Under the pieces are notes generated by a model. That model did no database searches. It was given only the letters and a program-made list of their open reading frames with translations, and was not told where the DNA came from. This document shows positions 12,239-33,260 of a DNA stretch of 64,000 nucleotides, piece after piece. Each line of letters opens with the position of its first letter. Positions within the stretch are counted from its first letter, which is position 1. Position numbers and translations under genes: made by a program. The stretch comes from Podarcis tiliguerta (taxonomy: Eukaryota), in NCBI GenBank assembly GCA_965153285.1, contig OZ229111.1; one strand, given 5' to 3'.

Positions 12239-12301
12239 GCTACATAAGGATCACTGCCATGGAATATCTGAATGAACAAGGCTGTTCTCTGCTCCTGACT
12301 G
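12239..12301 (+). pseudogene. Non-coding duplicate fragment of RPTOR exon 27 inside intron 25
   Basis: 59/63 identity with 15604-15666, same strand; all four differences are transitions. Confidence 0.92.
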
Positions 12302-15547: not shown

Positions 15548-15672
15548 TTTTTGGGATTGGGAAAAGGGAGAAAAGCTGGACTATTTTCACAATGGGAACC
15601 CACGCTACACAAGGATCACTGCCATGGAATATCTGAATGGACAAGACTGTTCTCTGCTCCTAACTGCTACAG
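15548..15672 (+). CDS. RPTOR: RPTOR exon 27-equivalent (125 nt): FWDWEKGEKLDYFHNGNPRYTRITAMEYLNGQDCSLLLTAT(D)
   Basis: Acceptor ctttcccag|T, donor CAG|gtgggt; contained in ORF 15405..15698. Confidence 0.97.
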
Positions 15673-18582: not shown

Positions 18583-18687
18583 ACGATGGTGCTATAAGGG
18601 TGTGGAAAAACTTTGCTGACCTGGAGAAGAATCCAGAGATGGTAACGGCCTGGCAGGGCTTGTCAGACATGCTACCAACAACACGCG
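18583..18687 (+). CDS. RPTOR: RPTOR exon 28-equivalent (105 nt): DDGAIRVWKNFADLEKNPEMVTAWQGLSDMLPTTR(G)
   Basis: Acceptor ttccttcaag|AC (AAG type), donor GCG|gtaggt; contained in ORF 18495..18734. Confidence 0.97.
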
Positions 18688-23880: not shown

Positions 23881-24967
23881 GAAGAGAAAAGAAAAACAAC
23901 AGCATAAGGAACATCTTTCCCTGAGGTCAGAGAGGCAGTCCATCTAGCCAAGGAGAAAAAATGTGGCATATAAATGTAAATAAATAAAGTACTCTGGCTG
24001 GTGCTCTCAGACCACCGTACAGAACAAGGGATGCCTTACAATGGAGAGAATGGGCTGTCACCTCCAACTGGTGCATCTCTGACCTCTTTGAGGGCATCCA
24101 TCACCACTGCTTTACTTCCTCCCAGTTTTGGGGCTTGTTTTAAAGGTGAGCCCATGGTGTTTGAGAGTGGCCTATGCAAGTCCTGCCCTGGAAAAGGTCA
24201 AGCAGGTTATTTTTCTAGAGTTCCTTAGGCAAACCAAGGGCAGCTAGGCTGGGAATGTGCCTAAGCTGCCCTGTCCTTAACAACTGCGCTGCTGCCGCCA
24301 CCCTGCAGCTCCTCTCATTATCCAGCCTTCTTCCTGATGACTTCAAATGAATCCCCTTGTACTGCTAATTTCCCCCACTTAAACAGTTGTTTGAGCAGAG
24401 TCCTCTGTAAATTGTCCTTCCTCTCTGAATGAGTGCTCATTAGCAAATCATTGAAGTGTGCTTTGTTGCTGCCTACTGTATTGCTTCACTGCTGAGCTGG
24501 TGGCTCAGTGAGGCCTGAGCAACACATCCCTTGGCTGTTTGGATTCACCTCTCCCCTCACAGGGTGTTGGGTTTCTTTGTGGGTTTTTCTTCGGTGAGGG
24601 GTCATTTGGAGCGCAGCTTTCATTTCTCACTCCTCCGCTGACAGCGAGGTGCCTTTCATTCTAGGTAGAGTATAGCAGGGCCCTTCTGAGTGGGATTTGA
24701 GCACATGTGCAAAAGAAGACCGGTCTTGCTTTCCTCCTCATGGCTAATGGCTTCCAAGGATGGCTGCTGTGATCAACCTACTCATCTTCCTTCCTTCCTT
24801 CCTTCCTTCCCTGAATGGAGGCCTCTCTGCCGCTACTGCTTCTCTCTAACTGTGTTCTTTTTTGTTCCTTTTGGGTTGCTTTTCCTAATCCTTTTTTTAA
24901 GATTTGTTTTGCTTTGGCTGACCAACTTACCCTTAGCATCAACCCCTTAATCCCTGTCTTCTCACAG

Positions 24968-25015
24968 GTCTGGCCCGAAGGGTTTCAATCTATCTTGACA
25001 GAAGTAAACAGGGAG
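24968..25015 (+). CDS. RPTOR: Candidate RPTOR alternative cassette exon (48 nt, phase 1-1): (G)LARRVSIYLDRSKQG(G)
   Basis: Branch-like ttaAt (A at 24950) and acceptor tccctgtcttctcacag|; consensus donor GAG|gtgagt. Length is divisible by 3 and stop-free in the RPTOR frame. No transcript evidence is available here. Confidence 0.7.
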
Positions 25016-26778
25016 GTGAGTGCTCTCTTTCCTCTTACCTACAATCAGCGCGGGAGGGGGTGGTCCTTCTAATCATATGTGTTGTTGTTGTTTTTAAAAT
25101 GGCATTCCTTCTAACATCTCCTGGGTCCTGTTAATTCTTGGAAGCAGCTTAGCTTCTCCTGGCCTTCCCATTCCTTGCTTTGTATTGCTTGTCTGTACTA
25201 TGCAGTGTGGGCTTCTACATCTGATATTCTGTCAAGATGGGCCTCAAGTGTCCAGTGGAAGAAAGGCAAAGGGAGGAGATTCGTGCATTTTCCTTCGCTT
25301 CGGGAGCCTGATCACAAAATGTGGGAATTGGAAAGTGTTTTCAAGATATGCAGAGGCAATATTGTTGTGTGATCACTTTATACAAGGATCGCAGCAGGCC
25401 AGCCATGCTCAGGGTACAGCAGCTTCTCGGCCACCACCATTACTCTTAAACAGTTCAAGAGATGGTCTGGAATGTTTGAGCATCTCTTCGTGAAATGCCT
25501 CTGTCTTTGTTGACTGCTACGTTTCTTTGATTTGTAATTATGGGATGCTGAGTGGAAGTAAATGGCAAGTGTGACCTTGTTTCAATCTGGAAAGTTGGTT
25601 TCCGCCTTTGGCAATTAATTGTCTGGAAAAGGTTTTGAACATTTCCAACCTACAGTAAAGCATGTATTTAGCTCTTTAGACTGAGACTGGGGGGAAAAAC
25701 CTGTGGAGGGATGGGACTTGTAATCCTTCTCTGTTGTTTCAGCTTTTGAGATAGTGACAGATGGCTGGCACAACAGGACATGGTATGTGTGGTATGTGTC
25801 AGAAAGCTGATGTAATCTTCTTAGGCGCTCTATGAATTATTAATATTCACTAGTTGATAAGGGCTGGAATGTGTCTGCAGTGATTATCAGAACAAAGGTG
25901 GCTGTGTGTTCTGTGATTCAGGCTTCTCTTAGGTGGGGGCCTTTAAACTTTCTCTGGTTATTGGGAAGCAGTGGAGAAGAACGTGCAAATACAATGGATT
26001 ACTATGAGCATCCCATCTTTTGTAGAAACTTGCTGGCAAGCTGACAAAGCTAAAATTAGGAAGGGTGGAGGCTGAAGGGGTTTCCTTTTGATAGGCTGGG
26101 GACCAGACCAGCTTATTGCAACCACCATAGAGAATCAATACTGATGATGCTTTGGAAGCAAAAATCTGTCAGGAGCACACGGATAGATAGCTCCGCTTCA
26201 GAGCCAGCCTGGCACACCTGTTGAGGTCTTTGAGAACACATTTCTTTCTGTGAGGAGTTGGAGAGTTTCAGAGTGGGAAAATGACCGCAAAAAGCACAGA
26301 AATATTTGCTCCAGATTATAAAGTGCAAAGACACTGCCATCCCAATCTGATAAATGTGACTAACCTTGTCTCTGATTCATTATTCTATGTCAAATGTAAC
26401 AAAAAAAGTGAGAAAAGGTCCATCTGGGGATGTGAGATTGCCAACCAATAGTATCTATCACAATAGCATAACCATGTGGTCCAGCCTCATTTCTCCTCAC
26501 TCGCTGGATGATGGCTAAAGGCAATGCAGGACTGTCTGTAAATGGGTTTGCTTTTAGTTGTTGTACTGATAGTTGAAGGAGTTTAGCAAATGTGGTAAAT
26601 GTGTCCTGGACAGTTGTTGGATCCTCTTAGGCTATCCTCCATCTTGCCTCAGTCTCACAACTAACAGAAAGTGTGCTCCAGACCTCCCACTCCTGCTTCC
26701 CACAACCTTAGAAATTTACCAGGGTAATACCACTGCATCAATTGCTTCTGGGAAATTAATGCATTCTAAGGTCCAAAC

Positions 26779-33153: not shown

Positions 33154-33260
33154 GAGCAGGGATGGTGGTGGACTGGGAACAGGAAACTGGTCTTCTCATG
33201 ACTTCTGGAGATGTACGGATTATAAGAATCTGGGATACAGACCGAGAAATGAAAGTTCAG
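33154..33260 (+). CDS. RPTOR: RPTOR exon 29-equivalent (107 nt): GAGMVVDWEQETGLLMTSGDVRIIRIWDTDREMKVQ
   Basis: Acceptor tttctttcctcag|GA, donor CAG|gtaagc; manual translation. Confidence 0.97.

Follow-up and report, generated by a model that had tools for sequence, protein, structure and literature searches.

The RPTOR Locus and the Cassette Exon

The window, that is, the whole stretch of 64,000 nucleotides of the lizard Podarcis tiliguerta analysed here, carries on its + strand the last eleven coding exons of RPTOR, which match residues 936-1335 of squamate Raptors. Between two of these exons, in an intron of about 14.5 kb, lies a candidate cassette exon at 24968-25015 (+). It is 48 nt long, has phase 1, and contains no stop in the reading frame dictated by the upstream exon. 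The constitutive upstream exon (18583-18687, +; ...DDGAIRVWKNFADLEKNPEMVTAWQGLSDMLPTTR + G) ends in phase 1 with ...ACA ACA CGC G|gtaggt at 18687, and the constitutive downstream exon (33154-33260, +; GAGMVVDWEQETGLLMTSGDVRIIRIWDTDREMKVQ) begins with ctcag|GAGCAGGGATGG at 33154. Both are identified by protein matches and lie 6.3 and 8.1 kb, respectively, from the cassette. They encode the WD40 domain of Raptor.

Together with the G carried over from the upstream exon, the cassette reads G-LARRVSIYLDRSKQG-G, and its inclusion amounts to 16 extra residues (G-LARRVSIYLDRSKQG), placed between R1123 and G1124 of the 1335-residue Raptor. The exon, (G)LARRVSIYLDRSKQG(G), is documented by its sequence and translation, by a spliced contig covering 24967-25016, by public isoforms, and by PDB numbering. 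Inclusion adds no stop codon and keeps the frame, 48 nt being a multiple of 3 as are the 51 nt of the form found in some fish, so the element does not have the character of a poison (NMD) exon.

The exon is free of the repeat families of the window, and no Rfam match was found at 24400-25600. Squamate-type SINE fragments are present in the window and point to a lizard. A partial copy of the RPTOR exon 15549-15671 (...RITAMEYLN..CSLLLT), limited to its 3′ ~63 nt and 94% identical, occurs at 12239-12301. It is located in the preceding intron, 3.3 kb upstream of its source exon, and looks like a decayed duplicate of an exon fragment, since both the 5′ half of the exon and a GT donor are absent. 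The possibility that the cassette is itself a diverged duplicate of its upstream exon was rejected, as only 2 residues are shared in a MAFFT alignment.

Splice Sites and the Upstream Intron

The cassette is directly preceded by ccctgtcttctcacag and directly followed by gtgagt. The upstream signals (24947-24967, +) consist of a branch-like TTAAT, a pyrimidine tract, and a CAG acceptor. A plausible branch site is TTAAT at 24947-24951, which conforms to yUnAy and whose A24950 stands 17 nt ahead of the AG. The consensus donor GTGAGT occupies 25016-25021 (+). The anatomy reported in the initial annotation (branch-like A24950, pyrimidine tract, CAG, 48 stop-free nt, and GAG|GTGAGT) is therefore present in the sequence as described. 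Both sets of signals are also legible in P0269, an unspliced ORF in a Logan contig of another species, which was retrieved by matching words of the open frame surrounding the exon. Here the cassette is preceded by ...PCLLTG, the translation of the pyrimidine tract and AG, and followed by GEC (= GGT GAG TGC), the translation of the donor.

Splice sites were scored with a rough weight matrix, so that scores and chance figures are approximate. The acceptor CAG reaches 8.1 bits, and only 2 acceptors in the whole intron are that strong; the donor GTGAGT reaches 7.5 bits, a strength attained by 3 donors in the whole intron. At thresholds of 5 and 6 bits, the only acceptor/donor pair in the 14.4-kb intron is that of the cassette, and by a hand estimate about 0.02 such in-frame open pairs are expected per intron of this size. 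The rarity of the splice sites is insufficient by itself to establish the exon, because the thresholds were chosen after the candidate had been seen and very many introns were read in the scan.

The 700 nt of intron upstream of the exon (24268-24967, +) are rich in pyrimidine, CU, and YGCY by comparison with the rest of the intron. They contain 63% pyrimidine versus 50% for the whole intron and 20 YGCY motifs versus an intron mean of 10.3 (95th percentile), which bears out the pyrimidine- and YGCY-rich character first ascribed to them; among windows of the intron, it ranks at the 95th-98th percentile for YGCY and CU motifs. GCATG is absent from 24268-24967. This region may be splicing-regulatory. 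The combination of CU-rich, conserved flanks with the absence of GCAUG suggests PTBP-like (CU-binding) factors as possible regulators of the cassette. A (CTTC)n-like microsatellite is found at 24779-24821, ~150 nt upstream of the exon.

RNA Evidence for Inclusion

Four sequencing runs (X1, X3, X23, and X24), taken from 24 candidates, were compared with 24370-25569. Run X1 (organism A, Logan contigs) yielded a 90-nt contig with a depth of 16.3 that matches 24967-25016 with 0 mismatches. The order of its parts is 18659-18686 (28 letters, the last of the upstream exon), 24967-25016, and 33155-33166 (12 letters of the downstream exon), and each of the two loose ends occurs only once in the window. 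Its junctions coincide exactly with those predicted, 18687>24968 and 25015>33154, so that both splice sites of the cassette are seen in use and the in-frame cassette exon proposed from the sequence is found in spliced form; this form is represented by one contig in one run, whose status as RNA is a guess. Neighbouring intron pieces in run X1 have a depth of 2.1-4.5 and show 1-3 differences. Since they differ at so few positions, organism A would be Podarcis tiliguerta or a close relative. In X23 and X24, two bulk RNA runs of organism A of which ~12% each was sampled, 0 reads fell on 24370-25569.

Run X3 (organism C) contains an unspliced contig of 492 nt, of which only 24894-25049 (+) matches, with 4 differences in 156 nt. 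Because the flanks of this contig diverge from the window, the cassette is seen to lie within a conserved core, which takes in 74 nt of the intron before the exon and 34 nt of the intron after it. In the runs of organisms B-E, a fraction of about 0.2 of the words of 24700-25300 is present.

An internal donor, GAA|GTAAAC after 25003, had been proposed to yield a 36-nt version of the exon. The motif exists as described, but as a donor it is weak (-0.8 bits on the approximate scale used here), and the contig of run X1 shows the 48-nt form. A search for the shorter variant in proteins gave no 12-residue form in the 38 cassette-bearing sequences or in the 345 retrieved proteins.

Conservation and Public Gene Models

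The cassette peptide is carried at the same junction by 36 of 345 retrieved public proteins. The carriers, found by reading the members of ten 90% protein clusters, come from an amphisbaenian, a caecilian, three birds, a horse, elephants, carp, salmonids, and pike, and most of these isoforms are automated predictions rather than cloned cDNAs. In most of them, the insert stands directly between ...DMLPTTRG and G[AS]GMVVDWE, and a few carp and char models differ on one side. The reading ...DMLPTTRG-LAR... is given by 32 of the 36 cluster-derived carriers, in models of ~930 to 1382 residues.

A peptide identical to that of the window is found in the amphisbaenian Rhineura floridana (isoforms X1, XP_061471764.1, 1351 aa = 1335+16, as well as X3 and X4), in the caecilian Geotrypetes seraphini (isoform X1, XP_033815963.1, 1351 aa), and in RefSeq and UniProt models of the birds Pithys albifrons, Pyrgilauda ruficollis, and Apteryx owenii. 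Equus przewalskii (isoform X5, XP_070082901.1) has LARRVSIYLDHSKQG, with one change. The elephants Loxodonta africana (isoforms X1, XP_064126659.1, X3, and X4) and Elephas maximus (isoforms X1, XP_049716877.1, and X3) have LARKVSICLDSSKQG, with three changes relative to the window (R to K, Y to C, and R to S). Several models of Cyprinus carpio read LARRVSICLDRSKQG, with one change, and several of Oncorhynchus, Salvelinus, and Esox have 17 residues ending in ...DR[ST]KGQG, the extra Gly corresponding to a 51-nt exon. The carrier models of Apteryx, Cyprinus, Oncorhynchus, and Esox are from Ensembl/UniProt. In addition, the downstream exon, used as a query against 1.84 billion representative proteins, retrieved P0024, a partial model from the characiform fish Prochilodus magdalenae (KAI4894127.1), in which LARRVSIYLDRSKQG is identical at 15/15 positions and the cassette is spliced to the next three Raptor exons.

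The pattern L-A-R-[RK]-V-S-I-[YC]-L-D-x-[ST]-K is invariant across the carriers, and such variation as occurs consists of whole-codon or conservative changes (R/K, Y/C, S/T, and one added Gly codon). Conservation of length, frame, and peptide extends from teleosts to a caecilian, squamates, birds, and mammals, far beyond the squamates and birds named in the initial annotation. Because a near-identical peptide stands at the same junction from teleosts to mammals, the exon must be at least as old as the ancestor shared by ray-finned fish and tetrapods. By our own estimate, this split took place more than 400 million years ago.

The initial annotation had called the exon hidden, which does not hold: it is no new sequence feature, since RefSeq and Ensembl models contain it. 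The same source had surmised that it might exist in automated isoform predictions, and this proved correct, isoform X1 of Rhineura floridana and isoform X1 of Geotrypetes seraphini being examples. Its suggestion that the exon was kept in non-mammalian vertebrates agrees with the fish, caecilian, amphisbaenian, and bird models, whereas the accompanying suggestion of a loss in mammals is contradicted by those of elephants and horse.

Included and skipped models occur within one species, as in isoforms X1 versus X2 of Rhineura, Geotrypetes, and Loxodonta. A search with the Raptor region of Lingula returned, as its best 120 Raptors, only forms without the insert, ungapped matches ranking first; many squamate entries of 1335 residues among those 120 are numbered X2-X4, a numbering that hints at additional, longer isoforms. 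The older Raptor model of the brachiopod Lingula anatina (P0021, UPI00078A42C6) has, within residues 840-890, a 50-residue insert at the TRG|SG junction. This insert holds ...KRSRSFGGISRMSFYKNK..., with a faint likeness to RRVSIY, and the current model (XP_013383806.1) is without it. It may result from read-through into the intron or be an alternative exon of independent or older origin.

Some fish models have unusual sequences upstream of the cassette. An extra 8 residues, QPSSSAHS, stand directly before it in isoform X1 of Salvelinus alpinus (P0286), ...DAHGCFG in isoforms X1 and X3 of Cyprinus carpio (P0272 and P0275), and 40 non-Raptor residues in the Prochilodus model P0024. These hint at further small exons or alternative acceptors within this intron, or at mispredictions. 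Other points of Raptor also vary in predicted isoforms. Residue 840 (after ...VLNSIAYK) is a second variable insertion point, with inserts of unrelated sequence (P0218 and P0222) of 31 residues in isoform X2 of Loxodonta and of 25 residues in Salvator merianae. In a chimeric-looking model of 752 aa (P0052), 26 residues are inserted at the next exon junction of Raptor, after ...EMKVQ and before DIPTGAD.

Place of the Insert in the Raptor Structure

The downstream exon aligns to residues 1125-1159 of solved Raptor (5h64_B and other entries), and the cassette is for this reason placed between R1123 and G1124. The exons of the window were searched individually, and the isoform containing the cassette was analysed by way of the public proteins P0324 and P0326. 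An AlphaFold2 model was built for isoform X4 of Rhineura (P0326, 1121 residues, cassette at 895-909) with 80 aligned sequences. In this model, residues 891-909 have a pLDDT below 50 and form only a weak 7-residue helix. This low-confidence stretch lies between the strands 877-883 (EMVTAWQ) and 914-918 (MVVDW), and the flanking propeller blocks have a pLDDT of about 85-90. Given such low values between well-scored strands, the insert is predicted to be a flexible surface loop in the C-terminal WD40 propeller that leaves the fold undisturbed, in keeping with the original proposal of an insertion into this domain. From the usual WD40 topology, we take it to be a D-to-A loop on the top face of the propeller. 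The same pLDDT below 50 suggests that the serine of the cassette would be accessible.

Kinase Motif and Possible Function

The motif R-[RK]-V-S is invariant in 38/38 cassette-bearing sequences and represents a conserved basophilic-kinase consensus. It matches the preference of PKA (RRxS) as well as that of kinases of the L-x-R-x-x-S type, among them PKD, CaMK, and the AMPK family. AMPK prefers a hydrophobic residue at +4, where the cassette has D. Canonical Raptor contains RRVS at 788-791, followed by S-Y. Since the motif of the cassette is invariant and equal to that of the Ser791 PKA site, phosphorylation of its RRVS by PKA, as put forward in the initial annotation, would be a reasonable idea, and the included isoform would possess a second RRxS site like Ser791 as a candidate phosphosite.

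PKA phosphorylates Raptor at Ser791, described as the only Raptor Ser/Thr in an RRXS/T motif, yet the S791A substitution does not fully block the effect of PKA on mTORC1 (PMC6529218). Ser791 is treated as a PKA site also in PMC10691799. It is from this combination, a site called the only one of its type and an incomplete block by its mutation, that the cassette derives its status as a candidate.

Raptor is the substrate-recruiting scaffold of mTORC1, and the cassette represents a cheap, testable candidate for tissue-specific regulation of the complex. It is conceivable, although rather doubtful, that the cassette serves as a tissue-selected second kinase-input switch on Raptor, displaying a copy of RRVS-x-Y on an exposed propeller loop. 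If so, cells including the exon would gain an additional cAMP/PKA or other basophilic-kinase input to mTORC1, possibly with 14-3-3 binding, and such an input would have been overlooked because all mechanistic work used the 1335-residue form. To our knowledge, this is the form on which structural and signalling work on Raptor has been carried out.

Interpretation and Alternative Explanations

The element at 24968-25015 is very probably a genuine, ancient, and alternatively included coding exon of RPTOR, which adds a 16-residue loop to the WD40 propeller. According to this interpretation, the spliceosome would use the CAG acceptor and the GTGAGT donor and so insert 16 residues between R1123 and G1124 without further change to the protein; the point of insertion is the loop that connects two β-strands of the C-terminal WD40 propeller. 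Skipping of the exon would give the canonical 1335-residue Raptor. The conserved task of the insert would be the presentation of the basophilic kinase motif L-A-R-[RK]-V-S-I-[YC], and its inclusion would be regulated, possibly by CU-binding factors such as PTBP.

With respect to this task, it is possible, though not likely, that the insert acts independently of phosphorylation as a structural or docking element, which for instance makes or blocks a surface for a partner or substrate. The V-S-I-[YC]-L-D stretch and the K-Q-G tail are as conserved as the basic residues, as expected from such a role, and the insert is located in a propeller loop. WD40 loops commonly form interaction surfaces (PMC6529218). 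On the other hand, AlphaFold2 gives no confident packed structure for the insert (pLDDT below 50, with the weak 7-residue helix), and the invariant R-[RK]-x-S bears the classic mark of a kinase site. The docking and kinase-site readings are mutually compatible. Direct joining of the cassette to the constitutive upstream exon in the contig of run X1, and the ...DMLPTTRG-LAR... reading of 32 of the 36 carriers in models of ~930 to 1382 residues, make it very unlikely that the exon belongs mainly to another transcript, with an alternative start or upstream exon in the intron and a short WD40-only product. What speaks for such a transcript comes from fish: the 40 non-Raptor residues before the cassette of P0024, where a Ser codon is consistent with a splice to a different phase-1 exon, and the ...DAHGCFG of the Cyprinus carpio isoforms X1 and X3 (P0272 and P0275). 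Being partial or automated, these models may contain prediction errors.

Two further readings deny the exon a coding function. Decoy exons are numerous in introns, and the spliced form is known from a single contig with 0 reads in two partly sampled RNA runs, as would be seen if a strong pseudo-exon were occasionally included as functionless splicing noise. However, the peptide agrees at 15/15 positions between lizard and a characiform fish and remains nearly identical across other teleosts, a caecilian, birds, and mammals; even the 51-nt form of fish stays in frame, and the intron flanks are conserved. Neutral intron sequence would not survive such a distance, and noise is hence highly improbable. 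The extension of the conserved core beyond the exon into the intron could in turn point to a conserved non-coding element, an enhancer or an intronic RNA, which is open and flanked by AG and GT by chance. Conserved flanks are usual around regulated exons. Since a spliced contig exists, no Rfam family matches, and the variation is by whole codons or conservative, as in coding sequence, this explanation is scarcely credible. An ancient, alternatively included coding exon of RPTOR remains the preferred account.

Comparison with Known Systems

A full-text literature search, which left most subscription journals outside its reach, returned no paper on the exon, its peptide, or the corresponding Raptor splice form. 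The exon is apparently uncharacterised functionally, and this silence of the literature is weak evidence because of the journals outside the search. The closest known counterparts are the automated RPTOR models of the X1 type from other species, which have the same junction (TTRG | GAGMVVDWE), length, and peptide as the cassette of the window.

Alternative splicing of RPTOR is also the source of isoform 2 (RAPTOR_v2, 1177 residues), which skips a block of internal exons. Entries of 1177 residues named isoform 2 or X2 are present among the retrieved Raptors. Isoform 2 is without 158 residues of the HEAT region, whereas inclusion of the cassette lengthens the WD40 domain by 16 residues. The cassette is neither this isoform, nor a poison exon, nor a core neural microexon. 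The core microexon class comprises exons of 3-27 nt, and the cassette is longer (48 nt), which places it outside the length range of the neural SRRM4 type. The TGC/UGC motif does not occur in the 30 nt before its AG. The cassette resembles microexons as more broadly defined (up to 51 nt) in being short, frame-preserving, and deeply conserved, in having conserved flanks, and in inserting residues into a surface loop.

A related sequence motif lies within Raptor itself. The site of Ser791 (PKA) and Ser792 (AMPK, 14-3-3), ...KMRRVSSYSSL..., contains the same R-R-V-S followed by x-Y as the cassette. The cassette has Ile where canonical Raptor has Ser792 and consequently lacks the adjacent AMPK serine. 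The Ser791/792 site is constitutive and lies in the low-confidence linker of residues 700-900, whereas the cassette is optional and falls in the WD40 loop at 1123/1124.
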